A stretch of 64,000 bases of DNA from positions 1 through 64,000 of the forward strand of contig MQRK01222231.1 in NCBI GenBank assembly GCA_001938485.1, written 5' to 3'. The notes beneath the pieces are model-generated. The model was not told the origin of the DNA. It was given only the letters and a program-made list of their open reading frames with translations, and made no database searches. The stretch comes from Girardia tigrina (Eukaryota). The number at the start of each line of letters is the position of its first letter. The first letter of the stretch is position 1. Positions 694-54,727 of this stretch are shown here, one piece after another. The position numbers were made by a program, and so were the translations under genes.

Positions 694-957
694 ATATACC
701 TATAAGTCTTGCGATTCATCCAGACAATACAAAGATTTATATTAATGCGAAACTAATGAATGTTTCTTGCGAAGTTAATCCAAATGAAATAATAAGTCAA
801 AAATTAATTACAAATATTGAGTTCATATTCAATAATTCGACATCAACTTCCATGCATCCACGACTTGTGACAATTTCAGGAACAGATAGAAGCACTATCT
901 GCTTTAAATGCGGAAGTGATCTGGTTCGCCCTGTTATGAAATGTTATGAATTTTTCG
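694..957 (+). CDS. Exon A1 of multi-Ig-like-domain gene (phase 1-1, 264 bp)
   Basis: tttag|AT acceptor, G|gtaaaa donor; stop-free (D)IPISLAIHPDNTKIY...VSC...TICFKCG..CYEFFG; about 45% identical to exon A2 by manual ungapped alignment. Confidence 0.8.
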
Positions 958-1656
958 GTAAAATAATTTTAATTGTTTTGTTTTTTTGGGTTTTTTAGTA
1001 TTTTAAGTTGAATGTATTCTTAATTTTCTACAAGAATTTAAGTACTTTAAATCTAATTTTAAAAACTTTTTATTCAGAATTTAATTTTAACAGCGTCAAA
1101 AGTATTTTTGAAACATTTATTAGTATTAAAATTAGAATCGTCTTCCCAGCAATTCTTAACACCACATTTATTTATTGACATTCTTCGTTGATTAATAAAT
1201 CTCTACTTAATATCTGAATACAAATGGGAAATTACAAAATTATTGAATCAAATACAATATTATTTGTCCGAATTACATGTAATTTAAAATAACTAGTAAA
1301 TCAAAGAAATATTTTTATATCCATTATGTAGAGAGAGCTCTACTTTGTCAACAAAATTTTAATTAAAAAATTATTTAAAAAAAACAATAAAAAATGAAAA
1401 AAAATCTGTTGGCCAAGCATATTTCCGCCTGCATAAAGCATGGATATATAAAAATATTTTTTTGATTAACTAGATAGACTTTAAATCGTTTTACTAGACT
1501 TTATTTTTTGAGTAATATGAACTACTTATAAATCTGGAACTCCAATGGGACCGTTTTTACCAAATTCTGAGACCTTAAAAATTTTTTGATCAAAATTTTA
1601 CATTATCATTTATTGTCATCGAAAATGAGTAAGTGTGCTAAGTTTGGAGAAAATTT

Positions 1657-1768
1657 ATTATATAAAGAAAGCTTTAATCAAATTCTATTTTCAAAATACA
1701 CACATATATATATATATATGTGTGTGTATTTTGAAAATATAATTTGATTAAAGCTTTCTTTATATAAT
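1657..1768. repeat. ~110-bp near-perfect palindrome centred on a (TA)n tract
   Basis: Arms 1657-1706 and 1717-1768 are reverse complements, with 1 mismatch and 1 extra CA unit. Confidence 0.85.
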
Positions 1769-2029
1769 TATTATCATGTTTCGGTGTTTATAAATATCAT
1801 CATCAGCAATATTTGGAAATTTAGCATTTTAATATTTAAATAGTTCAATATTATAATTTTTCTTAATAATTCAATTTTAAAAGGTATATTAAGTTTAAAT
1901 GGAATAATTTTAAAATTATATTATAATTGATCAAAGTATTATTGGGTATTAAGGGCAAAATTATTTTAATTAAAAATTTTAAGTATTGAAATAACCTTAC
2001 TTACCCATTTTGAATGTTAATTGATGGGT

Positions 2030-3200
2030 TGCAGTGTCTTATTAGTAGAGATTCACAAAACTGTGCTTGGTAAGACATGTGATTTAGCGAAGCGCATCCA
2101 AGATAAAATGATCACCAATACTATGATAGCTATTCACTGTCATACACACCGACTAGCATTAGCTGCAGCAGATTCAACATTTTTTTCAGAAATAGGACAG
2201 CTTTTGTATTATTGCCTCTTTTGTCTTTTCAGATAAGAGTGTCCATCATTATGGATAAATCACTCAGCAATTCGATAAAATTAAAGTGGAGACCGTAATA
2301 TTTTGGGAAGCTATATTTGTCTTTATTTTTCAAATGTACTCGAAGAGCGACAATGGGCACTTTAGGGTTAACCGCTATGTCATCTTGTGAGTGTTTGATA
2401 GTTGCACTATGAGGTTTTTTACTGGATCCAATCTACGGACAGCAAAACTTGCTAAATATTAAATGCTGCTGAGCATCTCTGTAACTAAAATTTAATGAAC
2501 TTGTAAAATGAGATGGTTGAGCTGCAAAGCATCTGTAGATGCAGCACTCAGTGAACTGAATCCCTTACTTCAGTGTCTGGACTACTTCGCTAAAAATTGA
2601 TAGGAGTCCACTGTGGCTAGTTTATTTCGAAAATTGATGAAGATTGAATTCTCGTGTCCACTCCATGATTTGGGAGTTTCTCTGCCACTGTCAATTCTCT
2701 TAAAAAAGAGGACCTCAATTTCGCACAAATTGATCCATCTATGCAGATATGTATTGACAATTTTCGAAAAATGGTGCTGGAACAAAGACAATGACAAAAT
2801 ATGCGAGAATGTTGGCCTAAATACAAAGTGTTTATTCACAACCTTCCAGATACCAATCATGATGAAGAGGAGAGAATGCATACATTAACAACTGCTTACG
2901 CAGAAGTCATGATACAGCAAATTCACAAACGCCTTCCAGAATCTGAGTTATTATGTTCATTCAAAGTCTTTGACCAAGATATAGTCCCGCCTGATGCGAT
3001 TCAGCAAAAGCGATATGAAGAACATGAAATTTTGCACCTTAGTGACAAGTTTGGTTCGTTCCTCCCAGCGATATCAACTGTACAAGCTGAATCGTTTCTC
3101 CTGAGAGAACGTTTACTCATGTCTGAGTTCAAACAGTTTCAAGGTACAGATGATGTATGTCGACAGATCATTCGAAGAAAGATTCATTTATTAGAGAAAG
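2030..3200 (+). mobile_element. Degenerate hAT transposase (ZNF862-like) remnant
   Basis: IHCHTHRLALAAAD and RWLSCKASV motifs; multiple stops and frameshifts. Confidence 0.75.
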
Positions 3201-3329
3201 GAAAAAATAATTTTTTCATTTCTAGTGTACACCTGTGACCCCCGTATTTAAAAATAAAAAAAACTCACTAGTTACTTTTTACCCTACGTTACTGCCAATA
3301 AAAAGGCCAAATTATCATTTTTGCTTGAA

Positions 3330-5280
3330 AAATGAAAGGATTTGTATTTACTTAGTAAATAAAACTCGGTTGCAAGCCATGTAGAAAAGTTGGATATCTT
3401 GGAGTCAAAGCAAAAAAACTGGAATGAATATTAGCAAGGAATAAGTCACTAATGAAATAACATATTCCGGAAAATATAGAAGATAACAGTGTGCGTCACT
3501 TCGAAAAAAATCTTACAACCATAAAGAATCTGCTACACATAAAGCAACAATTAAATTTATTTCTGGAAGATACAAAAAATCTATTGAAAATTTTTTAAGT
3601 CTTTATCAAATGAAAAAAAACAATTACGGAACAGGTTTTTCGCACTGCGTACAATATAGCAAAAGACAATTAATCATTTTATCATTTTGAAGCAGAAATT
3701 GATTTACAGGAACTCAACGGAATCAAAATGTGTCATATTCGATACTCAACAAGTGGGTGTTTTAACATCGTGAATCATAGAAGTGACGACATGAGAAAAA
3801 CTGTCGACGCAAAATTGTTGAATCAAAGAATAAATTTTCTTTAATAAGAGACGAATCAACGACAATAAGTAAAAAAAGTACCCTCATCGTAAATTTCCGA
3901 TGTTACGTCAAATGTGTTGAAATGAATTCACTGATAAATATGTTTTTGGACTTAGTAGAACTTGAAAAAGTACCGGTAGAAGTAGTATTTGATTCCTTAC
4001 CTCAATGTCCTCACTCTTATGGAATAAGAGAAAATTATTTAACCAAATATTTGTTTTCTCTGGCATGAAACGATGCAGCTGTGATGTTAGGTTGTAACAA
4101 TGGAGTCAAAAATTGCAATCTGAATGATTTCCTTCAATTATAGTTTGGTATTGAACTAATCACCGATTAGAATTATCAGTAAATGTTGTTAAGAAAACAT
4201 GATAGATTCAAATCATTTATTGATAAACGTTACGTAATGTATCATACTTCAGCAAAGAATAATAGAGAATTGCATTCTTGTGCAGAATTATTGGGAAATC
4301 AGCTGCTAAAAGTGGAAAGAATATTGAGTACCCGATGGGTTTCATCTAGTTTGCTGAAATTATTGTAGTATGGAATAATTTTTCATCCCTTGTACTTCAC
4401 TTTCTAGAAATTATGAACGACCCTACTAGAGACAAAAATGAGAAATGTACATATGATGGCATGAAAGTAAAAATTACATCCACAGAATTTTTACCGCATT
4501 TATAATTGATGTGTGACACACTCGACGATTTATCAGAACTAAGCTTGGAACTACATGACCGAAGGATGGATCTTTACAGGGCAAATAATAAAATTAAAAG
4601 ACTAGTACAAATTTTTGAAGACAGAAAACATACTCATGGGTTCTATCATATATGCGCTACTGATGTTGTACGTGTTCGCTTTCGTGGAGTAACACTTTAT
4701 GGAAAGCGATCAAGAAAGGATTCTGCCATAGATCCAAGTAAATTTTATACAAAATAGAAAGATTCATTAGAAAGAAGATTGCTTGATAGCAAATTAGATG
4801 AGTTGACGAATGGGTCTCGAGTACGTCGGCATAAAAATATTGATACCCAACTTACATTCGCAGAAGAAGAAATTCGAAACTTTTCACTTAGATTGCAACT
4901 CAATGAAATGAAATGATTCAAGGATATTGTGAATACATCCTCGAAAAGGCATATCCAGGAACACTACTGTATTTGGTAACTACTTTGAATACCATTCCAA
5001 AATCTTCCAGTGAATGCAAACGCTGGTTTTCGCAAATGAATATAATTGCACCCCGCCAAGAACTTCGTTAACGACTAAAACAATATCAGCACTTTTATTC
5101 ATCAAACTTGTCGGACCATATGAGTCTTTGGGCCTTTGAGTCTTTTCGATCCATCAAAATAAGTTGATCTCTGGATATTTAGATGACATCATGTGGCCTC
5201 AGATATGAACAGTAAAAAGAAGAAGTTGAGACGATATATCAGACGAAAATTGGACGAAATTGTGGAATATATTAGTACAA
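3330..5280 (+). mobile_element. Degenerate hAT transposase remnant
   Basis: DESTT, ILSTRWVSSS and SSSECKRWFSQMN (hATC dimerisation-like) motifs, interrupted by stops. Confidence 0.75.
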
Positions 5281-5449
5281 AAACTTGTTTTACTTTTATA
5301 TATGATTATTAATAAATATATTGTGATATATTTTTAATGTATTTTTATTATGAGATGACCATATATATATATATATATTGTACTTTTCGAGACTTATAAT
5401 AAATGAACTACATTTATAAGAAATCTCTATTTTAAAACTGCATTTAAAG

Positions 5450-5587
5450 CGAGGCTGCGGAGTCGGAGTAAAATTGTCCCATTCTGACTCCGACTCAAAC
5501 TCCTATAGTTTTAAAATGTTTAACTCCAACTCCGACTCCGGTTTCTCCAAAAATACCTAAACTCAGACTCCGAACTCCGTAGCCCTG
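5450..5587. mobile_element. hAT-type MITE with GGAGTC/ACTCCG subterminal repeats
   Basis: Termini cgaggctgcggagtcggagt / actccgaactccgtagccctg are imperfect inverted repeats; 8-bp flanks atttaaag and gtttaatg. Confidence 0.6.
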
Positions 5588-5694
5588 GTTTAATGTGCTG
5601 GTTATAAAAAATTTTCATTTGGCTTGACAAAAATATATTATATTAATTTTTTAAAATTAATTTTAAATTTTTTATGTTTATAGTTTTTTTTAAG

Positions 5695-5958
5695 CTTTAC
5701 AAATAATACTAGACATATTTCCAAGGGACACAAAGATCTACTCCCATAATCGCATAATGAACATTACTTGTGTTGTTATACCTGATGTGGTTATAGCTAA
5801 TAATTTAATTACGAATGTTACATTTATTAAAAATAATTCCACAATTACTCCAATATCAGAAAGAGTCATTATTTACGATGGTGTAAATAGAGGTACAATC
5901 TGTTTCACATGTGGTCATCACTTAATTAATCCATTTGAAAGATGTTATGAATTTTATG
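5695..5958 (+). CDS. Exon A2 of multi-Ig-like-domain gene (phase 1-1, 264 bp)
   Basis: ttttttaag|CT acceptor, G|gtaaaa donor; (A)LQIILDIFPRDTKIY...ITC...TICFTCG..CYEFYG; collinear with A1. Confidence 0.8.
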
Positions 5959-6789
5959 GTAAAAGTTTTTACATTTAGCAGAAAAAATGAAGTACTTTAA
6001 TTGATGTTTTGAGTTTTATTTAAGAACTTTAAAACCAATTAAAATTGTTTAATAAAAATAAAATTTATGAAAAATTATAAAAAATTTGTTTTTGAAAGCA
6101 AACATTTAATCCCAGATTATTTCAAATTTTTGCTAATATATGATTATACCATGGATTACAAAATAATCTCTTTGTTTTTATGTAATTTGACAATATGGAA
6201 ATTATCTAAAGATCTCGAAATCACTCAGATATACAATAACAATGATTTAAAGCATTTAGGCGAAGGGATTTGTGTAGCATATATAATTTGTATCAACGAA
6301 CTCGGATTCAGATCGATAATATACGCTACTCGAACTCAGGCTGTAAGGACCAGAAACAATTATTTTTATTCCCCTCTTCCATTGGTATAGTTAAAAAGAA
6401 ATAGTAGAAATAGGTATATAACAACTGTTTGGCAGTCCTAGTGTTAAATTTACGAAATTACGAAAAGATGCGAAATCATTCTAATATCAAAAATTATAAT
6501 ATAAATAATCGTTAAGAACTCTTTTTATTTTCTTTCCTTAAAAAGAAAATAAAGTTTTGCTGTGTCCATTAATCGCTTTGCTGATTTTTTTTAGATATTT
6601 GAAAAGATTTCTCCAAAGAATATCTTTCTGGGATATTCGTGGAAATTCTGTGTGTCGTCATCTTTTTTTCAATATTGTTGTTAACGTTATGTATTTACTA
6701 AGCGGATAGGTAATGGCAAAATATATTTCTTTTAACATATGCCTCTTTCCATTGTCCACTTACAAAAAAAACGTGACTACATCAACAAT

Positions 6790-9600: not shown

Positions 9601-9659
9601 TGCTCTTTTTTAAGAGCATTCGTCAGATTGTATAAAGTGGTTGTTTCGTTATTTGTTGG

Positions 9660-10532: not shown

Positions 10533-12660
10533 TGTGAGGAATATTTTAAATTGTTTGCATGTATTGATGCTGTATGTTGATGTGAGTATGTTGAACATAG
10601 AATGGTGATTCTCCAACCCAGATGGAAATTGGTATTTTTTGTAATTACAATGATTTATTTTTCGGACATAATTAAAATAATAATTTGATAAATTTTTAAA
10701 ATTAACAATTAAAATTACGTTTAATATTTTTTAGAAAAGAAAAACATTTAATTGGATATTAAAAAAATTAATAGAATTTAAATTAAAATCATTTTTAACA
10801 ATTTGATAACATTTTTATTATTTTGAGTTTTTATTAAGAAATTGTAAAAAATTATTATTTTTAATTGATATTTTTAGAAATGAAATATTTTTAAAAGATT
10901 TAGAAAAATTGTAAGAATAATAATGATTAAAAATAGAAATAAGAAAATCAATTAGAACGATGTCAAACGGTGAACGATCTTCCGAGATTTGTAATGACTC
11001 TAAATATGATAATAATAAATATTCAAATGAAAATTGTCTCAATGTTTTTAACACGGTGTCATGCGACCACGCGACACCAATTATCAGAGGACCGGAGACA
11101 TTGGATGGGTCAGATGCAAAATTAGAAGAATTTCTAATAAGCTTTGAGAGATATTCAAAAAATTTTGGATTTTAGGAAAAAAGAACAGCGACATTATTTA
11201 CAGCATTCATGACCTCAGAGGCGATAAGCATATATGAGGAAACATAAAGAGACAAATGGGAGATAAGAATGGGAAGGGCATTCTCTAAAGAGAAAAATAT
11301 CTTGGAGATTATGAAGGAATTTGTAGAGATTAGAATCGGGGAAAAATCCATCAGAAGTATTCAAAAAGATAGAGGAACTAGTGGAGAAACTAGTAGAAAA
11401 AAAACTGGGAAAAAGATTTTTCAGATCTAGAGTACGCTAACGCTATCGAAGATAGATACGTAAAAAGACAAATGACTCTCAGAAATGTCACAAAAGCAGA
11501 AGATATAAAGAATACTCAAGAGAAAAATTTCGAATTTGAGCTGAAAGACAGGAATTTAAGAGCGAATGGAAAATACGCGACAATGGAAAATAAAAAATGG
11601 AAAAATGTAGAATATAGAATTAGAAAACCGAAACAAAGAAACGAAGAGGGAAAGATCGAAGAACCAAGAAGAAATTTTAAAGCGAGAAGGATCACATGTT
11701 GGGCCTGCCATGAGGAAGGCCATGTGAGAGGGAAATGCCAAAATGTTAAATGCAACCATTGTAATAAGAAAGGGCATGTGATAACACAATGTTATGAAAA
11801 TCCAAACAGATTCAGAGAGCGTGAACAATCTGAAAGAGAAGAAACAAGAAATATAAGAAATGACTGAAGAGAACACACAAATACAAGGTACAGAGGTCAG
11901 ATGGGATATATGAATAGAAGAGACCAGGTAGAAAAATTAGAAGACTACGATGAAAAGTGCGAAAAATCTCGGACAGATCAAATAAAAGATGAAGTCTGAC
12001 AAGAAGAGAAAATATTACAAACAAGAGAAATTTCAGAGACGAACATAGAAACGAAGATGCACGAACACAAGAAGAAGTGATCAATGCTCTTCACTAAGAA
12101 ACGAATGTATGTGTATGGTTGACTGTATGAATGATTGTATTTATGATGACGTATGTTGTGTATGGGATGCTGTTGAAAATATTCCTCATGAATTATGTAT
12201 ATTAGATCATGAAAACGAAATACCCAATGAGAAATGTGACTGTATGATCCCAAGAAAAGATGAAGAATTTGATATATATAATGAAAATATCAAAGTTTAA
12301 AATAGAATACCAAGAACTGAAATGAAGACCTAGTGTAGAATTTCAATTAAAGAATATAAAAATACGATGTCTATTCGATGCGGGAGCACGGGTCAACGTA
12401 ATTAAATTACACATACTCAAAATATTAAATATGTCAAAATAAAGAAGGCAAAAGATGTGCACACTGTGCTAACGAAACTTGTAAACTACGGAATAGTACA
12501 ACTAAAGATTAAGATTGAAAGAATACAGAAAACAGTGGACTTTTTCGTGGTAAAAGATTTGCAACCCGAAATGTTTGCAGGAATGGATTTACTAAAAAAA
12601 TCCGCATAAAACTAAAGAAAGAACCAAGATACAAAGAAGGAGTGTTAATAATGCGCGATA
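10533..12660 (+). mobile_element. Truncated Gypsy-type element: LTR start, gag with two CCHC knuckles, protease
   Basis: TGTGAGGAATATTT LTR start shared with 60694; CWACHEEGHVRGKC and CNHCNKKGHVITQC; CLFDAGA protease-like motif; stops. Confidence 0.7.
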
Positions 12661-12923: not shown

Positions 12924-13190
12924 ATAAACAAGTGAGTATTCATATTATTCCAAGTGATACATCGATATACTTCGTGGAAAACAATTTAACAGTATTATGT
13001 GAGTTTTATCCATCTGATGTAATTAGAAGAAATTTAATTAGCGAAATTTTATTTGAATCTAATTACTCTTATTCTCGTGTTTCCCTATTACATATCTTTA
13101 TTGATAAAATAAATCCTCCTTATCCAACAATTTGTGTAACTTGTGGTCATCGAATGTTTTCATATGTCAAAAAATGTTATAAACCCTTTG
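12924..13190 (+). CDS. Exon A3 of multi-Ig-like-domain gene (phase 1-1, 267 bp)
   Basis: ttttctaag|AT acceptor, canonical G|gtgagt donor; (D)KQVSIHIIPSDTSIY...VLC...TICVTCG..CYKPFG. Confidence 0.85.
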
Positions 13191-17091: not shown

Positions 17092-17094
<3 letters not shown>

Positions 17095-17618: not shown

Positions 17619-17879
17619 GAAATTATAGTCTCACAATAAAACCAAATGTATCCATTTACTTGACAAAATATCCCATGTATGTTTTTTGCCAGTTATTTCC
17701 AGTTATTCTAGATACTTTAGTACTTAATATTGATCTTTCTACTTCTCAAGTTCCGTATCAAAGACTGGGTGTCAGAAATATATCATTTGGCCCAATTATC
17801 GGATCTGTAACACAAACTGTTTGTGTTACATGTGGCCATCGAATTATGACAAATGTTACTCATTGTTATCAACCTTATG
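17619..17879 (+). CDS. Exon A4 of multi-Ig-like-domain gene (phase 1-1, 261 bp)
   Basis: tttag|GA acceptor, G|gtatac donor; (G)NYSLTIKPNVSIY...VFC...TVCVTCG..CYQPYG. Confidence 0.8.
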
Positions 17880-25498: not shown

Positions 25499-25765
25499 TG
25501 GGTGACGTTCAAATTTCTATTAAACCAGATATGGAATTTATTTACAGAAGATATCAACATTTAATAACATGTGAGTATGTACCTTATTATATTGAAAAAC
25601 AAAGTGTATATTTCAAATTGTTTAATATACCAAATATTTTCGTTGGAGAAAATAATAAATTAGAAAAATGGTTATTAGGAACTTTACCATATACATTTAC
25701 AATCGCCTGTTTGGTATGCGGAAATACTCACATTATGAATACCAGTAGATGCTATAAACTTTCAG
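25499..25765 (+). CDS. Exon A5 of multi-Ig-like-domain gene (phase 1-1, 267 bp)
   Basis: tttag|TG acceptor, CAG|gtaatt donor; (V)GDVQISIKPDMEFIY...ITC...IACLVCG..CYKLSG. Confidence 0.8.
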
Positions 25766-27159: not shown

Positions 27160-28900
27160 ACATCAATATGACTTTTAACATTTTTATTATTACAACAAGT
27201 TTGATTGTGCTCAGGACAATCTTTGGTAAAGCGTTCCTAATTTTGCATCAGTCTATTAATTAATGATTTTAATCTTATTATCTAAGCAAATGGATAAATA
27301 AATAATTTGTTAAAATATTTACTCAAAACTTATTGGATAAAAATTAAAATTATTATTAATTAATAATTATAATTATTTGAAAAATATTAATTTAATCTAT
27401 TTATTGTAAAATTCTAAATAAAATTAAAAGACTTATTTTAAATTTTACAATTATTTTAAATTAGAAATAAATCTAAACATTACACATTTTCAGATAATAA
27501 GAATTAAAATTTTGATAGCCATCTGGGAAGAAGAGACACAATTCCAAATCCACATACAACATTCAAACAAAAAATATCATACATTCAAAATATTTTCACA
27601 TCCCCCTCGATTTAAATGGCTTTCAACATTTCTAATAAAAGTTCTTTCATCTTTAAGCTGTAACTCGTAGCTTCTGTCATGATTTCTTTTCACCACTGTT
27701 GCGGGACCCATGTAACGGTCATCTTCTTTTGAGATATTTTCCTTCTTAATCAATACTCGGTCTCCAACTTCAAAAATTCTTCTTGACTCTACTTCTTGTT
27801 CAAAATCTTTCAAATTTTCGTTATCTTCGTGATTGTTTTTCCATAAATGTCTCAATTTTCTTCCAAATACTATCTCGGCCGGTGACATACCTGTCGTAGC
27901 TTATACAGTACTATTTAACACAAACTCGATTTCTGATAAAACTTCTGTCCAATCTTTATGATCTGCATCCTTCATTCTAATATTCAAAACATCTCTGATC
28001 GTGCGAAATTGCCTTTCCACGATTCCATTCGTATTATGATGATATTGACTCGAATAGGATATCTCGACTTTGAACTTTTTCGCCATGTCCTTGAACAAAG
28101 CTGATTCAAGTGTTTTTCCTCTATCTACATGTATTTCAATTTCTGGTCCAAATTTCCATATCCATCTACCCAACAACAATTTTCCAACTATTTTTTCATC
28201 TTGACTAGTCACTGCATTCAGGCTTATATATCTACTGAACTGGTCAATTGTTACCTGTATATATTGACATCCATTTATATTTCTTTTGAATGTTTCACAA
28301 AAATCAATATATATTTTAAAGAAATGTTCATCCGCTAATTGCTTTATATGCTTTTTTTGTTTTGGTTGATAATTATTTATCAATTATTTTCTTAAATTAT
28401 TTATCACTCCGAAATTGACTCTGTTCTATCGCACTGCGCTTGGATCTATTGACAAGCAGTGGTTACATTTCTTATCTACCTTTTCCACCAACTCCTTGTC
28501 AACAGTTCTGTAAATCTTGCGGACTGAAAAAAAACTATTCTATCTATACCACAAAGGTAAGTATTGTGAATTGCTTTTACATCGTCAAAATTTTGTGTCA
28601 TTTTTGCTTTTTCTGTCAGCAAACATATTTGAAACTCCAATTATTTTCAAAGAACTTCGGTCAAATTATCAGATTTATTCACCAATGAAATCGTCACAGC
28701 CACGTCACATTTACTGACCAGTTCCTCCAACAAGAACTGCTGCTTCAAAATCGCTTCTGACAGTCGATGTACCTGAACTCGTTAGTCTTCTTCTATAACC
28801 GATCTCATCCCTGAAAAAATAGTGCCGTAGTTGCACATTATTTCGACCTCTTTTAGTCCCCATTTCAGCGCTTTGTTAACTAGGTTTATGAATTATTTTC
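27160..28900 (-). mobile_element. 3' part of a Gypsy element: RNase H/integrase, PPT and 3' LTR
   Basis: Integrase motifs IDQFSRY, HVDRG and NGIVERQFRT; PPT aatcgaggggga directly before LTR start TGTGAAAATATTTTG at 27600. Confidence 0.8.
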
Positions 28901-33094: not shown

Positions 33095-33338
33095 TTTTCA
33101 ACAATAAAAATTCATTAACGTGGCAACTTTGTTTATAACTATAAAAGAATAAAGTCTTAGATTGTGGAATTAATCCTTTATTCCTTTATATTATAAAAAT
33201 AATCCTAACCAGATTAATCCCAAATATGTAATTATTGGATGAATCTGTTTAAGATGGTTTTTAAAAAAAATAAACCAATACAACGAATATAAACAAATAA
33301 ATGTGAATCTTTATTTTTTTAACAATTAACCTTTAAAT

Positions 33339-34226
33339 CAGTGTTCTGGCCTTCCAATGAGAATGCTTGTTGTTTACCAGCTTAATGTCACGTGTGTTGT
33401 ATGATTCACGATTCTAGAAAACTATGTATAATGGTGTTTATATGCGTCGGGTTTTACTCATTATTGTCTTCCCAATGTCTTATGTGAATTTTATTTTTGA
33501 TGAATGTGTTCAGTCGGTGATTGACGATAGAACGACATAACAGCCGTCCTACTCGCATACAAAACACAAAAATGGCTATTTTTGGCGTTATGTAATTATG
33601 CAATGCCCCCTTAGTAATAAATATGGATATAATTGACAATACAAGTCATAAATTTCAAAGAAAATTCACTGATTTTGATACATATCAAGTTAAAATAACC
33701 ACCGAGTTACTAGAAGAATTGCAAAATTGTCAAAATCTCGATGAGATCACTTTAGATATCAAAAATCTTCCAATAGGAATAATCATCACGCATCAAGTTT
33801 TATATCTTCAATTTTCACTGCTTTGAAATTACAGGAATGTTCCATCTATCGAGTCTAAGAGAAGCTGTTAAATCTTTCTTTTCATTTACTTTATCTTTGA
33901 GAGGAGTCTCTCTTGTCTTTTCGAGTTTTACTGTTGGTGGAATAAAGTTCTTATTGATACTAAAGTTAGGAACGCATTTTTTTGCTTGATATTAATTGTG
34001 TTTTGTATGCGAGTAGGACGGCTGTTATGTCGTTCTATCGTCAATCACCGACTGAACACATTCATCAAAAATAAAATTCACATAAGACATTGGGAAGACA
34101 ATAATGAGTAAAACCCGACGCATACAAACACCATTATACATAGTTTTCTAGAATCGTGAATCATACAACACACGTGACATTAAGCTGGTAAACAACAAGC
34201 ATTCTCATTGGAAGGCCAGAACACTG
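33339..34226. repeat. 231-bp internal inverted repeat (33339-33569 / 33996-34226)
   Basis: Arms are reverse complements with one mismatch seen. Confidence 0.9.
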
Positions 34227-34828
34227 TTTGTGGTATTTTAATTTGTATGAAGGCGTTGCTGTAAAATTAAATGTATGAGATTGTTATATTGTTTGTTTTG
34301 ACTAAGTGAGTGGTTGTTTGGTTATTTGTGAAGTGGAGTTCTTTACTTGTTCTGACACCAATGTAAAATAGCTAACTGAAAACGTGTTTCAGTGAACTCT
34401 TTTAATGTAACAAAAAAATAAAGATAAATATATATAGAAATTTTATTTTTATACAATATAAATAAACATATAACAAAAAAATCACATACGAGAGAATGGC
34501 ACGGATAAATTTCGGTTTTGATTAGTGTTTATTGTTCTAAGGTTTCAAAGGAACAATCTTCTGTTGTAACAATGTCGGTGGAAACGTCAGATAATCATTT
34601 GGTTGCACAACGAGATTTTGAGGAAACAGATTATGTGGAAAGACGCACTTTCAGGGGAAATAATAATCCATCAACGACAGAACGATTCTTCGGTAAAGTG
34701 AATATCGACACTGGACGCTCGTTCTATCGCAATTACTGATTTCGTGAATTTCCGATCGGTTTATGAGAAATCCGTACAGAAAATTCCGGATAATATTAAT
34801 ACAGATAATTAATATTAATATTGATTTA

Positions 34829-34884: not shown

Positions 34885-34947
34885 NNNNNNNNNNNNNNNN
34901 NNNNNNNNNNNNNNNNNNNNNNNNNNNNNNNNNNTATATATATATAT

Positions 34948-35019: not shown

Positions 35020-35360
35020 CTATAATAACAATTGGCGTTTAAGCCAGTCTGTACAATAATTTCCACAAAGAAATGTTAGTGGATTTTGATACATTACATA
35101 ATTATATATGTCAGGTTGTTGCAATCGTTCCAATTTTGTTACCAATGTTGATGGGTAATACATCCCAAGTGGATCGAATACTCGAATAAGGTCTGAAGTC
35201 ACATGTTCTGCAATCCAGTGTTCTCCTGGTAAATCAGGAGTCTGAGTATTAATTACATATCCTCCATCGAGTAGATAATCTGGAACTTTATCCAACGAAT
35301 ATACTCCACGGAATTGAGGATATCCTTTCAGTACTTTTTCAATCTGATATGTACTTTATA
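35020..35360 (-). CDS. Polinton adenain-type (C5) cysteine maturation protease
   Basis: INTQTPDLPGEHW, VFDPLG and YQNPLTFLCGNYC give the catalytic H/D/Q/C pattern; true start uncertain. Confidence 0.85.
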
Positions 35361-35442
35361 TGTAAATATAAAAGGTTTTGGTACAACTTACTTCATTTAT
35401 TATTTCTGTTCGTAATTGCTGTTTACAGTTCTAAGACTGTGT

Positions 35443-36686
35443 TTATACAATAACTGTACCATCTTTTCGTATTTGTATCTCACTATCAAATACTCCATAT
35501 ACATAAAATATAATTGCTTTATCTAATGCCTTATGGAATCTTAAATCCAATTTTAAATTGCCTGTTCCTGGCATTTTTATTTGATCAACATCAAAATTAT
35601 GTGCCAAAACAAATGTAAAGTAGGGGTGTTTTGTTTTGAAATCATCCATAGTGATTCCATTATTCATATTTTTATTCACGAGTACCATGCTTAATATTAT
35701 AGACTTGTAGTAAATAAATCAGTAAAATCATTCTTTTCAAAGTTAATTTTATATGAATCTCTGTAATCATTTTCTCGAGATAGGGTAAGAGAACTAATAT
35801 TACAGTTGTCAAATGCTGAGCAACAGGATGCGTAATCTCCGCAAACTTTGTTACTATCTTTAAATGTTACCAATACAAATTTTGTTAAACGTTCATCACT
35901 AAACAGGTTTTCCTTGTATTCACCATGTGATCCTTTAGGAATTGAAAACTGAACAATTTTTGCTTTTCGAATGGGATATATATCACTTTGATTATCAAGA
36001 CCCATAATATGAACCAATCTTACTGATTCTGTTGTACGAACACGTCGTATTAATAACTTTGCACTCTCAATATATATTTGAGGCTTAATCTCTGTTTCAG
36101 TACCAGTCTTTTCATATTGAAAGATAACTTTACTTTCATTTCGATGAATCTTGATTGTTATATTGACATTTGGTATGAGATATTTTGGCTACTCAAAAAA
36201 TTCCAGATTTAACGGTTCGCATAATGTCATCAAGGCTGATTTCCGCATCCATTTGACTCTTTCAGTTGCCTCACCATACCCCATGGACTTGAAAAACGTA
36301 TTCTTTGTATCTGAAACTAAATTTAATGTAGTCTCAATGATAGCCTTTGGATAATAACTATCATTAGTGTCTTCAATCTTAGTATTATTGAGAAAGAAGG
36401 TCATATCTTTAAATAAGCAATGAAAGAGGTAATTATTCGGTATAAATTTTGTAATGTCGATAGTAATGTCTTTTCCTGATTCATCAACTTCTTTTATTTT
36501 AATGGTAAACATTATATCTTTCATATCAATGTATTCATCTTCACTACCGATAATATCAATCTCTATATGAGATGTATTATACCCATTAATACTATGTTTG
36601 GGGTAAATATCTTCAAAAGCATATGAATCTATAACAACTTGTGGTGGAGCTGGACTAAATATGTCCAATTCCGATTTAGTACTCAT
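35443..36686 (-). pseudogene. Polinton major capsid protein (double jelly-roll), frameshifted
   Basis: N-terminal KSELDIFSPAPPQVVI and C-terminal GNLKLDLRFHKAL...VYGVFDSEIQI; split across ORFs 36189-36686, 35697-36017 and 35443-35688. Confidence 0.85.
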
Positions 36687-36970
36687 TCTGAGAATATAGT
36701 TTTCATACGTTTTGTTTCTTTGTTTATATCTAAACCTTTCCTTTTTCTTCCTCCACCACCTTGATCCATTACTGAAACGGTCTCACAAAGCGATAAGCAC
36801 CTCCTCGTCGGGAATCTCTTTAATAATGGTTTGTTGAGACTGTATGACAACTGATGTTTCAACCACTTGTCTGCCTCCATCTTGCTGGTCTTTGATGCCT
36901 TTGCCATTTTTAATACGCTTCCGAAACCAGCTGGGTCTTCGGGGTTGAAGCATATCTTTTCCATCAACAC
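36683..36970 (-). pseudogene. Polinton integrase N-terminal fragment fused by deletion to the C-terminus of the gene upstream of MCP
   Basis: NPEDPAGFGSV..ADKWLKHQLSYSLNKP..KRFPTR is a Maverick integrase N-terminus; no DDE core follows; ends GGGGRKRK..TIFSE. Confidence 0.7.
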
Positions 36971-37055
36971 AACAGTTGCACTTAATATTCAATGATAGAT
37001 TAGGAAATGAAGACCATAATGAACTTTTATATAATAATTCAATTACCGTTTATAT

Positions 37056-37556
37056 TTATTTTTTAATATTAGCATCATTTTCAATGACATCTAATGCCTT
37101 TTTCGTACCATATGATATAGATCCACTCACAACTTCTGGAACAATAAAACTGGCAAGCCATTGAAAGAATGGTATTAAAGCAGCCCATACGAAACCATCG
37201 CCGTCTGGATTTCTTTGCTGATATTTTTTCTTTTTCTTTATTTCATGTAATACTTTTGCACCAAAATAATTTGTATTTGATTTTGTAGGTGGTGTAGTAA
37301 ATCTTTGATTAAGAGTATGTAGTTTTGTTTTTAATGCCCTTGCCTTGAACATTTTTAGCAATGTATCTTGATACTTCTTCAAAGATCTTTTGTAGTTGCC
37401 AATTTTTACATTGCCAGTCATAATATTCATCAGAACCTCAAGGAAATCATTCTGTACAAATGCTGGGAACTTATATAATAGATCCCATCTATTTGTTCCG
37501 CTTTTTAATAATGTTTCAAAATATGGAATACTTCTAGTAATGTGCATCATCATCAA
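37056..37556 (-). CDS. Polinton hypothetical protein with basic tract and GxGF-amphipathic motif
   Basis: Open 166-aa ORF containing KKKKKYQQRNPDGDGFVWAALIPFFQWLASF. Confidence 0.5.
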   Translation of the reverse strand: MMMMHITRSIPYFETLLKSGTNRWDLLYKFPAFVQNDFLEVLMNIMTGNVKIGNYKRSLKKYQDTLLKMFKARALKTKLHTLNQRFTTPPTKSNTNYFGAKVLHEIKKKKKYQQRNPDGDGFVWAALIPFFQWLASFIVPEVVSGSISYGTKKALDVIENDANIKK

Positions 37557-40187: not shown

Positions 40188-40457
40188 TTGAAACAGTACA
40201 TACAGTCGTTGAACCAGATGTTGATATATTTTTGACTTATGAAAGTAAAAGAGATATTTGGTGTACAACAGATCCTAAAGAAGCAGAAAACCAATTTCCA
40301 AATTTAGCTTTTGCGGGTGTTTCTGAACCTTATTACGTTCAGATAACTAATAGGCATATGCAAATATGTAAAGATGAAAGTATTTGCGTAAGAGCTATAT
40401 GTTTTGGTTGTTCAGATCCACAATTAACATTTACTCGGAAATGTTATTTGCCTCATC
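40188..40457 (+). CDS. Exon A6 of multi-Ig-like-domain gene (phase 1-1, 270 bp; may instead start at ATG 40124 with a signal peptide)
   Basis: ttgcag|TT acceptor, C|gtaaaa donor; (V)ETVHTVVEPDVDIF...IWC...AICFGCS..CYLPH, with two extra Cys. Confidence 0.8.
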
Positions 40458-40508: not shown

Positions 40509-40781
40509 CATATCCAATTCAAGTCAATATAGTACCTCATGACACAACTTTATTTTACATGAATCCACATACAATACAATGTTTCTATGACCCCTACTTT
40601 GCTACACATCAAGAGATTGAATATGTAATACCTTCTTTGACTGAAAATTTTCATTATACCAAAGGTCCAAATTTAACAATTCAAATTGTTCATTCGATCT
40701 ATTTACTGAATTACAGCGTTTGTGTATACTGTGGATATAATTATAAATACATGAATGTATCAATGTGTTATCAATTAACAG
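40509..40781 (+). CDS. Exon A7 of multi-Ig-like-domain gene (phase 1-1, 273 bp)
   Basis: Follows a 51-nt intron with ACTAA branch-like motif and caag| acceptor; CAG|gtatga donor; (P)YPIQVNIVPHDTTLF...IQC...SVCVYCG..CYQLTG. Confidence 0.8.
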
Positions 40782-42397: not shown

Positions 42398-42418
42398 CGA
42401 AACCACGCTCTGCTACCA
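42398..42418 (-). promoter_or_regulatory. Primer-binding site complementary to the initiator tRNA-Met 3' end
   Basis: Minus-strand TGGTAGCAGAGCGTGGTTTCG. Confidence 0.7.
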
Positions 42419-48100: not shown

Positions 48101-48345
48101 GTGTTATATAATATAACTCGTATTGGACTGTTTATAAAATGTTATGGGTCGGGTGACTCGTGTATTTTCTTCATTTAAATCTGAGAACACTTGATAAAAA
48201 AACTGTTTTAAGCAGGAAAATCCACTATAAAAAAACAAGGAAAAATAACTATTTTCACCCGAGATTAAAAGTTACCGAATTTCGGCACATGACCATTTCA
48301 TATTGCTTGTGCACCCCCATTGAAAATTTCTTGAAAAAGGCCCTG
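45118..48345 (+). mobile_element. hAT element with TIRs and decayed transposase; contains a nested Charlie-like end at 45832
   Basis: CAGGGCCTTTTT...AAAAAGGCCCTG termini; 8-bp TSD ttacaatg/gtacaatg; WCAVHR and YEVQFAEH motifs; nested cagtggttttcaacctttt. Confidence 0.85.
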
Positions 48346-49669
48346 GTACAATGTGTAAAGTTTCTGAAAAAGTGTTTGTTAAGACGAGTCAACATTTCAG
48401 GTGTACAACAGAAAAAACTACAGCAAAAATCAGTCAGAACAAATATGAAGTAGACAGTATCCTAAAACTCGCTCATGATATTAGAAAACGATTCGATGAT
48501 CAGGTTGCTTCAAAGAATGATTTTACCAATAAATGAGAAACTATCAAAAATGAAATTAATGTTGATGATTCTGAGACTATGGACGAAGAAAATCTTTAAG
48601 AGCTATGTAGAATGGGTAAAATTTTAAATATTTAATTTTTTTTCACTTAAAAATAAGGAAAACCAATATATTAATTAAAGTTTATTAAAAATAAAATACT
48701 TATTCAGTTCAAATTAGAAATCAAATAATATTTTTTTAAATTTATAAATTGGAAAATGTAGCACAAAATTCATTTACTGAAATGTCTTCAAATGTTTTAC
48801 GTAAATGTTTTGCAAGAATTCAAGGATTGTTGCCATGTGTAATAAACCTTTATGCTATTCGAAATTATTTTAAAATAAAGATATTGAAATTTTTGAATTC
48901 AAATTTCAATATTTTTAAAATTTTAAATACCATTTGTGAGATATTATTCTCATTTGTTTTAATTCACCGAAACCGGTGTCAGTGTATCTTTTAAATATAA
49001 CTTTTCCGTTGTCTGCCGCTTGTTTATTACACCATTATAATAAACTTTATAATATGAAATGCTTCTGATAAATTGCAAAATTATCATTTCAAAGTATTTC
49101 TGACAATTTACAAAATGAATAAAACTCCTGTAAAGTTTCTGACCATTTTCGAAATGAATAAAATTTTTACGAATTATTTAGATAAAAGCGCAGTTGAACC
49201 TGAAATTGTATAGTAGATAATTCCTATTAAACAGTATTTCGCAACCTCAAACCGACAATAGTTTTGCAAAACAGTTAGAAATACCTAATATGATTCAAGA
49301 TTAAATTTCTTTTATTGACTTTTGATTTTAAATTTTATTTCATTATACTTTTACTCATACTTGTGAATATAAAAATATATAAGAAGCAAAAAAGAAAAAA
49401 AAACATTGTAATATAATTTTAGTGTGAATTTATCGAAAATCTCTCAAATACATCGTTACGTTTGTGACTTGTTTGTCAAAACATTTTTTAATGAAACAAT
49501 TAAGCATTTTAGGTCAAAAGATCCTTTCAATAAAATGCATTCAAATATTGCATATGATGAGGAATTAGTTAAATCGTAGTTGGCTAATCAAAATTTTAAT
49601 AATTTTTTTTAAGTATAATTTTTTGAGTTTTTATGTTATATTTTAAAATTAATTTTTGTAAAAAATAAT

Positions 49670-50397
49670 TAAAAAGCGTCAAAGAAATTTGGAATGGAAG
49701 TCAACATACAAAAAAGCAAAATAATGGTTTCAGGAAACCGTAACAACGAGGTTAAACTGGAGATCTACATTCAAGGGGAAAAGCTGGAGTAAGTTAAGAG
49801 TTTACAAATACTTAAGGTTTACTATCACAGAAGAAAGCGAAGAAATCATAAACCGCATTGGTATTGCAACAAGCGCAATGATTAAGCTTAGTACAGTTTT
49901 TAACCTCAAAGAACTCCATTTCAAGAGCAGAATAAGGATCACTAAGGCTATTGTATGGGCAACATTTCTCTATGGATGTGAGAGTAGGACAATAAATCAG
50001 AAGAGCTTGGATAGACTTAAAGCATTTGAAATGAAGTGATACTTAAAAAAAAGAAAAGAAGACAAATGACTTTGCCTGGAGTAGAGTTACAGAAATACTA
50101 GGTAAAAGACCGGAATCAATAGAAGAGACCATCAAGAGAAGGAAGTTGAAATTTTACGGACATCAAATAAGAATACAAGCTCTAGCAGAGGCTATGATTG
50201 AAGGACCTGTGGAAGGAGAAAGACCAAAAAGAAGACCAAAGATGTCATGAAGAAGCGATTTAAAAGAATGGAATGGATTGAGTATGAAATACCTGAGAAA
50301 AGAGGTTACAAATAGAGAGATGTCGAGAAGGCTTGTGCATAACTAGGTGCACCCACGGCTCAAGGGCTAAGGTCAAAAAGAAGAATAAGAAGAAGGA
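49670..50397 (+). mobile_element. 5'-truncated RTE-like LINE
   Basis: KFGMEVNIQKSKIM, LYGCES, LKAFEM, RRKLKFYGH and IEGPVEGERPKRRP motifs; (AAG)n tail. Confidence 0.8.
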
Positions 50398-50779
50398 AAT
50401 TGGAATAAAATAATTTTAATATAATATAAATAAATAATTTACGATAAAGTATTGTGACTAGTTGAGGATAAATGTTCTTAATATCTTAAAAGTGCGTAGT
50501 ACGTTCAATATGTCCTCAGTTTAAGATAGAAAAAAATAGGATATTTATTTTTTCGTATATTTACATAAATTTTTATATGTTAAAAAATCAATATTAATTC
50601 TAATAAATTACTATTGTTAATATTTGTAAATCCAAATGTAAAGATGAACGAAATTCTCTTTTATAATGCTGTTGATTCGTCATTATATCAGTGTGAACAG
50701 CCTTTGTACAATAATAAAAGATTTAAGTATTTAAAAAATCTGTTCAAAATTTGTACGTGTGTATTTTGACTGGCGAAAT

Positions 50780-51468
50780 GGTGAATCTTCGAATAGAGTG
50801 CTGTGTTGAAATTTCAGAATTTTTTTAACAATGCGGTTACCATTTTTAAATAAGAATGCAGTGACTGAGGAAACAACTCTTTCTATCTATTTGCCGAAAT
50901 GTACTCGTAAATCATAAGAATGGAAACTTCCAAATGAGCAGCCGTCAAACAAACTGAGATCAGGAAGAATATATAAAAAAATACAATAATGATAATTTGT
51001 AGACAGAAATAGTGTAATCAAGTTTGATTTCACTGAAATTGGCTGAATTATCAATGTAGCATAACCAAATAACCTTGTAACAACTGATAGAGTAGACACG
51101 AAGCTCTAAATATACGTTATGGCTATTGCAAGTCAATTTGTTATCAAATAAATGGTACAAGACAGACAATTTTAGAGATAGTTTCTTTTTATTGGCTAAT
51201 CCATCTTATAGCCCAGACATAGTACATAGTAATTTCTTTAAGAAGCATTTCAAAGGCATTAAGTTTTACAGTAGTTAATAAATCGGGAATTTTTTATTAA
51301 AAAAGAGCCTGATTTCTTTGAAAAAGGCTTTCCAGTAGCTAAAAATCCTCTGAAAATGTGTTCACAATATTGAGTCCTATTTCAAAAAATAAACTAGTAG
51401 ATTTTAAATATATTTGATTACTTTCTTTTTTAAATCTTAGCCTGGGGACTTCTTGAATGAGTCACGTA
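50780..51468 (+). mobile_element. Decayed mariner remnant
   Basis: PSYSPDI-like motif and PDFFEKGF; mariner-like end ...gagtcacgta. Confidence 0.5.
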
Positions 51469-51770
51469 AATATTTTATAGATTAAGATTAAATAAAAAAT
51501 GGACGAAATACTCTTTTTAATTATGAGTTAAAAATATAATAATTTTTCAATTTTAAAAATTAATCAGGATTCAAAAATTAAGGTATTAGTAGTTTAAATT
51601 AGTAAGAAAAGTAAAAATTTTGTTTGACTGTATTTAGAACAAAAATTATTAATTGTACATTTATGAATTTAAATATTTATAGAACTAAATAATATTTTGA
51701 AGAACTTGATATGGAAACATGACTCACACAGCTTTATTGAAGCACTTTTCCACAGCTTATCAACAAAACG

Positions 51771-53272
51771 ATTGTAGGACGTTTCAACCAATCATCTAAT
51801 TCAACCCATGTACATTATCAACATCGGCCCTTTCAACCCATGTACATTTTAAACCCCGACATTTTCAATCCGTGTACATTTTCAAACCGGCCCTTTCAAC
51901 CATATACATTTAAAACCACGGTCGTTTCAACCAATATTTCAGTATAATTAAAAAAATAAAAGTGTAAGAGAGTGTCGTTGTTAATTTTTTAATTTTCGGA
52001 AAAAAGAATTTTGGTTTTTAAAAATTTCGAATTATAATAGAAATTAAAAAAATAATGGAAAATATAATTAAAAAAAGAAAATAAAAAAATGAAAATTTGT
52101 TTAAATAACAAATTTAACCTGTTGTAGATTTGCAAGTCTTAATTTCTTTTTGATTTAGAATGGAAGATAATTCCCTACTTAACATGGTGGCAACGCTAGC
52201 GGATACAATCACGAACCGACTGATTCCCGACATGTCCAGATCGGAGAAGACCTTGAGAAATTTATTTCTCGCTGCAGAAGATATTTTGAAGCAGCGGAAA
52301 TTAATCAAAAGAAATGGCAAACATGTATTTACTCAATGATACATTAAGACCTCTTGGAAGCATATGAGAACACAGCTGATAATTTTGAGGATCGGCTAAG
52401 ACTAGCGTTTGAGAAGCCGAGAGCAGCCGCGACGGATTGAGAAAAACTGTTGAGTTATCGCAAAGGTGCTGATAACGCATAGACCTTTTTCAAAAAAGTA
52501 GACCAGTTGGTAAAAAATGCGTTGTCGCGTAGACTCGAGGAAGAAGAGCTAAAAGCTCAAATGTTAATTCATTGCATTGATGATGAAGATGTTGTTCGTG
52601 AAATTAAATTGCGGAAACTAAAGAGTGCCAAGGAAATATCGTTGCACTCGTAGACGAAATAAACTACGAAAAGTAGAGCAGGATCAATGCTGTCCGAAGT
52701 TATCGAGATGTTGTTCAAAACAGCAGGGCTCCTGAGGTAACTAAAAAATGGGTTAATCAGACTCAGCCGAGAAAACAACTCTCAAGAGAGGAATCAACCG
52801 AGTCCAAATGCCATACTTGTCAGTAACCAGGGCATTTCAGCAGAAATTGCCAACAAATAAGACCTGTACAGTGTTGGAATTGTAAAGAGACTGGGTATAT
52901 GTCGAAACTGTCCTAACAGACAGCCATTGGCTTGTTTCTTGTGCGGAAAAAAGGGACATAGGTTTACTCAATGTCCAGAGATACGCTGTGAAAAATGTGG
53001 CCGGAATGGGCATCTAGCAGCGGCATGTTTAGTGAACTCTGGCAGACAGAATAATGGTTACGACAATGGAAGATTGAGAATGCAGTACAATGATCAGAAA
53101 TTTTTAAAAAATAATATTTTTGATGGCTGTACATTAGTTTAAGAAATAGTATATAATAATTTACTATGGGTTGGAAATGTGTATCTGTGGAGAGTGTCGT
53201 TGTTGAAAATGTAAATGGGTTGAAAATGTACAAGGATTGAACTAGGTCATGGGTTGAAAGGGCCGACTACCA
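51771..53272 (+). mobile_element. MULE-type TIR element carrying a decayed retrotransposon gag with four CCHC knuckles
   Basis: Perfect 9-bp TSD AACAAAACG (51762-70 and 53273-81); ttcaaccc/gggttgaa repeat-rich TIRs; CHTC..GHFSRNC, CWNC..., CFLCGKKGHRFTQC and CEKCGRNGHLAAAC. Confidence 0.75.
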
Positions 53273-54472
53273 AACAAAACGCAGATGTACTTCAAGCTTC
53301 ATAGAATAAATCTTTGCTAAGGGTTTAGAAAAAAAACAGCACACTTTTTAAGAAGTCATAATTTTACGAATAGAAAAAGGACTACTATAATTAATGTCAG
53401 CACAGTTATTATCCAAAAAAAATCTTTTAGTAATTATTTTTGGCTAATCGGACGATATGGCCACATGATGATAAATCTCCAACTTCACTCAACAGGAAAT
53501 CGCGCCATGAACCATTTTCATAAAATAGACAAAATAATCTTCATCAGTTTAAAATTTAAGCACACTCAAAAAATTGTCTTTATTAAAACAAACATATGTT
53601 CATATTATTAGTTGTTTTTTATAATTATTCAGTGAAATAATCTTTCAATTACCAGTTCCAAAGAAAACAACGAAATTGTGGATCGTAAAATGATAAGATA
53701 AAATTGGAAGAAAGCATGTGAAATCGGGTTTATTTATTTAAATTTTTCACCATAGAATTATAAGTGTGCACTGCAGTAATATTTCTGAGCAGAGACAAAT
53801 TGAAGAAGGAGCTGTAACCTCGAAGAGTCGTTGTTCAAATAACTGATGAGCACTCAATTTTGAATTCAGTTGAATGAGTCTAGTTTAGAAACTAATGAAG
53901 TTTTGTTAACTACTGAAAAAAAAGAGACCACGGAAAATGGTCAACTTTTTTCCTGATACTTTTTGAAAGTCTCTTTTATCGCAGTCTCTTTTTACTTGTC
54001 TCTTTTGGTATTATTCTACTGGTATCATTAGTACGAAAAATAGATTGATTCTTATGCCTATTTTTTGCAGGTGTTTTTTTAAGAATTTGGAAATTCAATT
54101 TGTTTACAAACAACAATCCATAGTTATTCGCAACAAATAACCAACAATTTACTGACATTTTATGCTACTTGATATTTCGTAAGAGTCCAAATATTCCAAC
54201 CTACTTCAATTTTCAAATAATTTACACGAAGAAGACTGTATGAATCGTACTTATTCATTTGAAAGAAAAATAATATTTTATTATTCTAATCATAATTTTT
54301 ATCAAAATATTATAGAAAACCCTTTTTTTCAAAATTAAATACTTTTTAGATCCACGAAAATAATTAAATTGTTCTCACAGACATATTGCTCTAAGAATGC
54401 GCCATATTACTTTAAAAATTTATTAATAATAATTATTATAAATATTATATATTTTTTTCATATATTTTAAAG

Positions 54473-54727
54473 CAAATATAAGTTTACGGCACGATCCTAA
54501 TCTTTTGGTATATTTGGTTTACTATTTTAATTATACGATAAAAACGTATTTTGAATATCGAAACGTACAGTACGATGCATTTTGTACAAATACAACTCTT
54601 TTCTCTGTGGGATTTGTAAACGGCACTTGGATATACTTAATAAAAACTGCTTTTGGCGGATTATACGTTTTTCGATGTAGATTACTTAATACATCAATCT
54701 ATATGCCATTAGAATTATCGATTTACA
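54473..54727 (+). CDS. Exon A8, divergent Ig-like domain (phase 1-1, 255 bp)
   Basis: ttttaaag|CA acceptor, A|gtaaat donor; (A)NISLRHDPNLLVY...FCTNTT..NGTWI..GGLYVFRCRLLN; five N-x-S/T sequons; stop-free. Confidence 0.6.

Follow-up and report, generated by a model that had tools for sequence, protein, structure and literature searches.

In Hydractinia, the Alr genes encode clustered single-pass proteins in which every Ig domain and the transmembrane (TM) helix has an exon of its own and in which atypical Ig motifs go with a canonical fold; the proteins carry 1-3 Ig domains and an ECS region and often have ITAM/ITIM tails (PMC9546547). Pancrustacean Dscam1 is a surface receptor with tandemly duplicated Ig-coding exons and with FNIII domains, in which one exon is chosen per cluster (for halves of Ig2 and Ig3 and for all of Ig7) between constant exons (PMC5465998). 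Long multi-Ig rods of the sialoadhesin/hemicentin type concatenate many Ig domains, one exon apiece, and project outward. The domains of these rods are canonical and detectable by Pfam, and the proteins are mostly single-copy.

Here we analyze a stretch of 64,000 nucleotides of Girardia tigrina DNA (contig MQRK01222231.1, positions 1 to 64,000; the window), which lies in a planarian gene family that resembles each of these systems in part. Like Alr, the family appears to consist of clustered single-pass proteins with one exon per Ig domain and TM helix, atypical Ig motifs and a canonical fold; unlike Alr, it has at least 21 predicted domains, another Cys pattern, a putative TILa/VWC-like domain at the N-terminus and, at the opposite end, a tail too short for ITAM/ITIM (about 6 residues). 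No proteins of Alr length were found in a profile search. The window gene has tandemly duplicated Ig-coding exons, as does Dscam1, but these are whole-domain, position-specific and apparently concatenated, with no FNIII exon seen and no long tail. In contrast to the sialoadhesin/hemicentin rods, the family is Pfam-negative, tandemly multiplied and length-variable.

Results

The window contains eight exons of two Ig-like classes:

694-957, + strand: exon A1, class A, one of the repeated N-terminal type; its Ig-like domain is four-Cys and Trp-less
5695-5958, + strand: exon A2, class A, final member of the repeated N-terminal type
12924-13190, + strand: exon A3, class A, opening a position-conserved 12-domain block; groups with C227973:84384 (support 99/99)
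17619-17879, + strand: exon A4, class A; groups with two positional paralogues
25499-25765, + strand: exon A5, class A, faster-evolving type
34885-34934, no strand: assembly gap (N50), unfilled, within the A5-A6 intron
40188-40457, + strand: exon A6, class A, faster-evolving type
40509-40781, + strand: exon A7, class A, separated from A6 by a 51-nt intron
54473-54727, + strand: exon A8, the first class B (two-Cys) Ig-like domain, with G-x-Y-x-x-x-C close to the exon end

A first-pass annotation had placed eight exons at exactly these bounds, and each is indeed 255-273 nt long, a multiple of 3, AG/GT bounded, in phase 1-1 and free of stops; joined, A1-A8 give 2,121 nt with a frame that is stop-free throughout. 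The conserved motif described for A1-A7 also holds, with P9, C25, P29, C69, C72, C83 and Y84 invariant in all seven, and A1 and A2 are 46% identical (estimated before at about 45%). The AG/GT and phase pattern by itself could arise by chance; under loose criteria, scanning for splice sites and phase yields 17 candidates on the + strand and 11 on the - strand, many of them overlapping. That the exon array is real rests on its shared motif, on homology and on an exon order that is conserved, and not on the splice and phase pattern alone. A1 is 70% identical to C227973:74737, and all 50 of the complete class A exons on three contigs are open and in phase 1-1.

A8 does not have the A1-A7 motif, is not detected by the A1-A7 profile and reaches a profile-profile probability against class A of only 0.9%. 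With no motif and no profile match, A8 was considered as a chance exon, an explanation dropped after tblastx surfaced a syntenic paralogue, C227973:9079, in the same position after an A7-type exon. A8 is a real exon, of a second Ig-like class (class B) that retains only G-x-Y-x-x-x-C of the canonical D-x-G-x-Y-x-C Ig motif.

The window exons are the middle of one longer gene. The array had been taken to span 694-54,727; its eight exons do, but the array does not end there. Beyond the window the contig carries six further domain exons and then a TM exon at 82,534-82,634 (contig positions), with 1,267 open codons and 41 N-glycosylation sequons from A1 to the TM-exon stop. The gene thus has at least 14 Ig-like exons and a cytoplasmic tail of about 6 residues, its 5' part being off the contig. 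In each of two contigs, and also in the spliced database model P0013, the TM exon sits 44 nt (44-45 nt) past the final Ig exon; a signal-peptide exon starts the next gene. Signal-peptide and TM exons frame the array. The next gene's first exon encodes a signal peptide and a Cys-rich domain in both contigs; its TILa/VWC identity is a lead only, the match to the TILa model (Pfam PF12714) scoring 18.4 bits (E 0.0024), under the gathering cut-off of 27. Broken pieces of this first exon also turn up at dozens of other, unrelated places.

The A5-A6 intron spans 14.4 kb. The sequences flanking the N50 gap do not overlap each other; since the gap lies inside this intron, the reading frame is unaffected. 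In two paralogous units the introns that connect A5-type to A6-type exons, 339 and 291 nt long, contain no gap, and the A5-A6 order is therefore backed independently of the gapped contig. Some introns between domain exons are just 41-77 nt long.

The genome, whose scan for copy number the first-pass annotation had suggested, contains at least 150 exons of this kind and at least six distinct copies of the A6-A7 pair, although these may include alleles or misjoins, the assembly being fragmented. The order of the pair is conserved, the A6 copies are 34-49% identical to A6 of the window, and the arrangement with a short intron recurs in every copy and on a contig from another sample (L021). By coordinates, exon order is equal on C177119, C244560, C233829, C220125 and C221558, and every exon of the window resembles the same-position exon of another gene copy more closely than it does its neighbors. 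Homologues of matching positional types are present in unrelated samples, and P0012, a database gene model from a related animal, strings together types 7 and 8, class B and the class A domain that comes next. The repeated N-terminal run comprises 8 domains in one gene and 17 in another array, with near-identical duplicated blocks within. Variability lies mainly among gene copies and in the N-terminal repeat number.

AlphaFold predicts an Ig-like sandwich for A1 (pLDDT 89.9) and an all-beta fold for A8 (pLDDT 84.5), the best fold matches of which are Ig-like (Z up to 7.1); a fold other than a beta-sandwich, which would have told against the Ig reading, was not seen for either exon. The top structural match of A1 is ICAM-3 domain 1 (Z 8.9, rmsd 2.4, 78 aligned), followed by ICAM-5 and ICAM-2 (Z 8.6); Z values of 7-9, as for A1 and A8, are middling. 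Domain 1 of ICAM/VCAM also carries two disulfides, but differs from A1 in Cys spacing and shares only 6-9% identity, the likeness being one of fold only. The C-strand Trp is missing from class A (in an alignment of 50 exons, Trp never occurs more than 3 times in a column). Cys25 and Cys72 are lost jointly in 2 of 49 exons and Cys69 and Cys83 jointly in another 2, with no other loss pattern; the disappearance of the cysteines in those pairs points to two putative disulfides, C25-C72 and C69-C83. C25 falls within strand 21-28 and C72 within strand 68-73. A zinc-binding CxxC was considered and rejected: the two CxxC cysteines do not disappear together, each instead going along with a partner farther away, and the domains lie in an extracellular setting. 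Language-model neighbors of P0012 are Ig families (0.88-0.91).

The exons match no Ig model in Pfam, and neither PDB sequences nor word-indexed protein searches nor an Atlas feature search for A1 returned a match, within the length and sensitivity limits of these methods. P0018 and P0020, returned by a profile search, are chance matches. Neither Pfam, PDB sequences nor the literature searched yielded a characterized, invariantly spliced gene to which the exons correspond, nor did the latter describe the family; the tandem multi-Ig family is apparently undescribed.

Between A2 and its positional paralogue dN/dS is 0.35, and for A4 it is 0.28-0.49. Pooled over the window gene and its paralogues, the comparison called for in the first-pass annotation, it is 0.45-0.52, indicating purifying selection; recent duplicates give 0.28, and some domains come near 1.

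Discussion

We consider it fairly likely that the window holds the middle of one gene belonging to a multi-copy, tandemly arranged family that encodes type I membrane glycoproteins, with the gene's exons spliced in order and a likely role of the protein in adhesion or recognition. Such a gene would begin with a signal peptide and a small TILa/VWC-like Cys domain. Next would come a single short Ig-like domain, then similar class A domains in variable number and a fixed 12-domain block (nine class A, three class B), and last a transmembrane helix with a tail of some 6 residues. Consecutive splicing of all exons, the most probable outcome, would produce an N-glycosylated, disulfide-stabilized rod of at least 21 domains and at least about 1,900 residues, reaching far out from the cell. 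The protein would probably serve in adhesion or recognition, its specificity varying by gene copy, and A5-A7 are candidates for the domains that bind; lacking a signalling tail, the protein would require a partner or a C-terminal scaffold. Much of the Ig-superfamily reading first given to the exons stands, namely one Ig-like domain per exon, in a surface protein that is restricted to its lineage and matches nothing named.

As to function, a structural surface-coat or spacer glycoprotein free of specific recognition, its divergence reflecting weak constraint, is a possible though less probable alternative. It would fit the great length, the 3.3 sequons per 100 residues, the missing signalling tail, the dN/dS near 1 in some domains and the absence of a Cys pair from one A7-type copy. 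Against it stands the C227973 paralogue pair, in which A5-A7 differ at 25% of codon positions 1+2 versus 16% of sites in those parts of the flanking introns that can be aligned (Fisher p about 1e-4), an excess that needs the omission of a non-alignable upstream segment (49% different, removed after inspection) and is erased when that segment is included. A4 of the same pair differs by 5%, and A5-A7 contain no stop codons despite their divergence, an outcome reached in 0 of 2,000 neutral simulations. The speed of A5-A7 relative to introns is a hint of diversifying selection, and gene conversion could mimic the excess.

As to splicing, a less probable alternative to the joining of all exons is that the same gene undergoes frequent in-frame exon skipping, mostly in the N-terminal run, giving many isoforms of differing length and domain content. 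Every exon is in phase 1-1 and interchangeable in frame, and the duplicated blocks of the N-terminal run would suit such a scheme; Alr genes are described as altering their domain content through splicing (PMC9546547). Symmetric phase, however, is an expected leftover of exon duplication anyway, exon order is fixed across copies, and the flanks share no common regulatory motif: in a search for docking or selector elements no flank k-mer rose clearly above shuffles, and only AT-rich words in duplicated blocks were found.

More speculative, and rather unlikely on present evidence, is a flatworm-specific polymorphic recognition complex of tandem giant Ig receptors for self/non-self or pathogen recognition, in which diversity would arise through gene duplication, change in N-terminal repeat number, positive selection on A5-A7 and in-frame exon skipping. 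No self/non-self or pathogen-recognition locus of this kind in flatworms appears in the literature searched.

A Dscam-like cassette, with one array exon chosen per transcript, is very improbable. Many similar whole-domain exons do lie in tandem, and introns as short as the 41-77 nt of some pairs hinder splicing in other animals; but the obligatory pre-TM intron is likewise 44-45 nt, so short introns are normal in this family. Since the exons group by position across copies, concatenation is favored over mutually exclusive choice. The two domain classes alternate in a fixed order, kept in at least six copies, no constant exons surround the cluster, P0012 concatenates its domains and no selector-like flank motif is seen; the combinatorial or mutually exclusive cassette that the first-pass annotation had entertained finds no support here as the main reading. 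Finally, the notion of dead exons, transposon-borne fragments or an assembly artefact, to which the TE-rich introns, the scattered first-exon fragments and the near-identity of some duplicated blocks might lend color, is already largely refuted by the intact class A exons, by purifying selection, by homologues from unrelated samples that fall into these positional types and by a Pfam search in which no exon matched a TE domain.

The predicted surface proteins are very large and make up a family of considerable size, one that is invisible to Pfam and nearly missing from protein databases because gene callers register single exons only, and that adds two atypical classes to the known Ig domains. 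Should the speed of A5-A7 not be linked to a ligand, the family would be an unusual member of an ordinary kind of adhesion or coat protein. If it does reflect ligand specificity, the family would offer, for a flatworm that regenerates, a concrete candidate in cell recognition or immunity that is testable by knock-down.

Results

The eight Ig-like exons lie where the first-pass annotation had placed them, on the forward strand of the window, which is the first 64 kb (GC 32%) of contig C222231 (94,843 nt; assembly of 1.43 Gb in 255,254 contigs); each is 255–273 nt long, bounded by AG and GT, in phase 1-1 and stop-free, with a total of 2,121 nt. The array is, however, bigger than those eight exons, and continues with six more domain exons and a transmembrane (TM) exon.

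694–957 (+), A1
5695–5958 (+), A2
12924–13190 (+), A3
17619–17879 (+), A4
25499–25765 (+), A5
40188–40457 (+), A6
40509–40781 (+), A7
54473–54727 (+), A8
C222231:67,533, further domain exon
C222231:68,747, further domain exon
C222231:76,361, further domain exon
C222231:76,661, further domain exon
C222231:76,962, further domain exon
C222231:82,220, last domain exon
C222231, stop at 82,634, TM exon ending in a stop, 44 nt past the last domain exon

Chance candidates also come out of a loose splice-and-phase scan of the window, and the proof of the exons is therefore homology. A1–A7 (class A, four Cys) have P9, C25, P29, C69, C72, C83 and Y84 in common at pairwise identities of 16–46%; A8 lacks this motif, matches the exon at the equal position in a paralogous array and defines a two-Cys class B with 41 matches genome-wide. 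The scan with a class A profile that the first-pass annotation had called for gave at least 150 exon matches in the genome (420 candidates). Six distinct A6-type copies, 34–49% identical to the A6 of the window, and roughly ten copies of the last Ig type were counted, part of which may be alleles.

A run of 50 Ns (34885–34934), from which no frame shift is possible, interrupts the A5–A6 intron, and its left and right flanks do not overlap. Since an A5-type exon leads to an A6-type exon gap-free over 339 and 291 nt in two paralogous units on contig C227973, and the A6–A7–B order recurs on further contigs, the order A1–A8 is sound, as judged from paralogous arrays rather than from sequence through the gap. 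Just left of the gap lie two inverted copies of about 234 nt (33336–33569 and 33996–34229; 99% identical), a putative MITE-like element or fold-back.

From A1 to the TM-exon stop, a local frame check gave 1,267 open codons with 41 N-glycosylation sequons; all searches were made exon by exon rather than with the joined gene model. On C227973 and in the spliced database protein model P0013, this last Ig type is likewise followed by that TM exon. The three tails are of about six residues and all end in E-x-hydrophobic, which we take to be a possible PDZ-binding end. On both contigs a further gene begins some 6–7 kb past the TM exon, and its first exon encodes a signal peptide together with a Cys domain of TILa/VWC-like type (score below the Pfam cut-off); the genes are therefore arranged head-to-tail. 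In the second gene of C227973, the signal exon is followed by one short domain, by eight class A exons similar to each other and then by the A3, A4, A5, A6 and A7 types, and C239057 carries 17 N-terminal-type exons, including recently duplicated blocks. A complete protein would, on this layout, have 21 or more domains. The N-terminal region of the C239057 array seems to differ: an additional open, AG/GT-bounded exon upstream of its first class A exon (C239057:57794–58031, minus strand) resembles the short first Ig type. At their 5′ ends (C222231:88218–88831 and C227973:40960–41576) the two downstream genes share 90% identity over 618 nt, a far closer match than that between the genes directly upstream, which points to gene conversion or to recent recombination where genes start.

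Fragments of the family also occur elsewhere. At about 30 places on many unrelated contigs, for example C172996:2543, C248256:76054 and C169148:99505, the signal-peptide/Cys exon recurs in frameshifted or truncated form (residues 12–73, about 80% identical); these copies probably represent a gene fragment that a mobile element has picked up. A class A exon in truncated form (profile 13–85, 75-codon open frame), possibly the same captured piece, occurs singly on eight contigs:

C104861:1581, truncated class A exon
C182719:723, truncated class A exon
C217150:152314, truncated class A exon
C19052:402, truncated class A exon
C170873:50195, truncated class A exon
C63600:709, truncated class A exon
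C243824:1093, truncated class A exon
C218898:3664, truncated class A exon

Within the A5–A6 intron, broken ORFs (35020–37556, minus strand) have no Pfam match and presumably resemble Polinton/Maverick capsid-type proteins. Degraded LTR-retrotransposon pieces in the window (integrase core, E 1.3e-9; Gag zinc-knuckle-like and protease-like fragments; weak RVT_3) are:

27577–28383 (−), LTR-retrotransposon piece
11472–12600 (+), LTR-retrotransposon piece
52860–53050 (+), LTR-retrotransposon piece
56989–57438 (−), LTR-retrotransposon piece

Discussion

The Ig-like fold proposed for these exons is supported by structure prediction for A1 and A8. The AlphaFold model of A1, made with 47 paralogous exons as input, is a beta-sandwich (pLDDT 89.9) whose closest structures are domain 1 of ICAM-3, ICAM-5 and ICAM-2 (Z 8.9, 8.6 and 8.6), followed by other Ig domains; Foldseek rows were mostly Ig-type, none with E below 0.001. 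The A8 model likewise consists of beta strands throughout (pLDDT 84.5), and its Ig-like matches reach Z 7.1. The canonical Trp is missing. All four Cys are kept in 45 of 49 distinct exons; two have lost C25 and C72 together, and two C69 and C83. This paired loss suggests a B–F disulfide and an additional F–G disulfide, and it speaks against a CxxC that binds metal. Both exons without C25/C72 are positional paralogues of each other, and the disulfide reading therefore rests on about three events.

The headline idea of the first-pass annotation, a combinatorial receptor cassette, is unlikely. In the tree, exons from different arrays cluster with those at the same position, in most cases with strong support, and for 11 of C222231's 12 class A exons the best outside match is at the same or equivalent position; classes A and B alternate in a fixed pattern; the spliced model P0012 joins four successive exon types in one string; and no selector-like motif stands out in a k-mer count of exon flanks. 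Together these fit constitutive concatenation, alongside which exon skipping could still occur. In four runs guessed to be RNA, 7–8% of the words of window positions 600–6,100 are present, about the share expected from A1 plus A2, which a TE fragment could equally give.

The dN/dS comparison between paralogues, also proposed at first pass, gave pooled values of 0.45–0.52 for window exons against positional paralogues and 0.28 for recent duplicates. Between the two C227973 units, dN/dS is 0.28 for A4 and 0.94–1.0 for A5, A6 and A7. At codon positions 1+2, A5–A7 of this pair differ by 25% (A6 alone 30%, A4 5%) versus 16% for alignable introns (p ~1e-4, one non-alignable segment having been dropped post hoc), and the exons stayed free of stops, an outcome of 0 of 2,000 neutral simulations. 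These figures are a hint of diversifying selection on A5–A7, in a single C227973 pair that is not the gene of the window and of which one copy lacks two paired Cys; gene conversion could also produce such an excess.

Beyond this genome, 18 true hits, none to a named protein, came out of a profile search over 1.84 billion representatives. Two of them are spliced UniParc models; the remainder are mostly ORFs of a single exon on short contigs, from samples that are environmental or unlabelled. The hits span the same positional types at 27–59% identity, and thus the architecture is common to related species. The family was judged to be other than Dscam1 (PMC5465998). Among known systems the Hydractinia Alr cluster (PMC9546547) comes closest: its genes are likewise clustered, with one exon for each domain and Ig domains poor in motifs, but size, Cys pattern and tail set the two apart. 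No published description was found in the literature searched; the family is real and apparently undescribed so far. Most likely, its products would be long glycosylated Ig rods held in the membrane by a single helix; they would act in adhesion or recognition, and their specificity would be distributed over gene copies and repeat number, not splice choice. To this picture the window and its contig contribute the membrane anchor, the arrangement of the genes head-to-tail and the domains that evolve fast.
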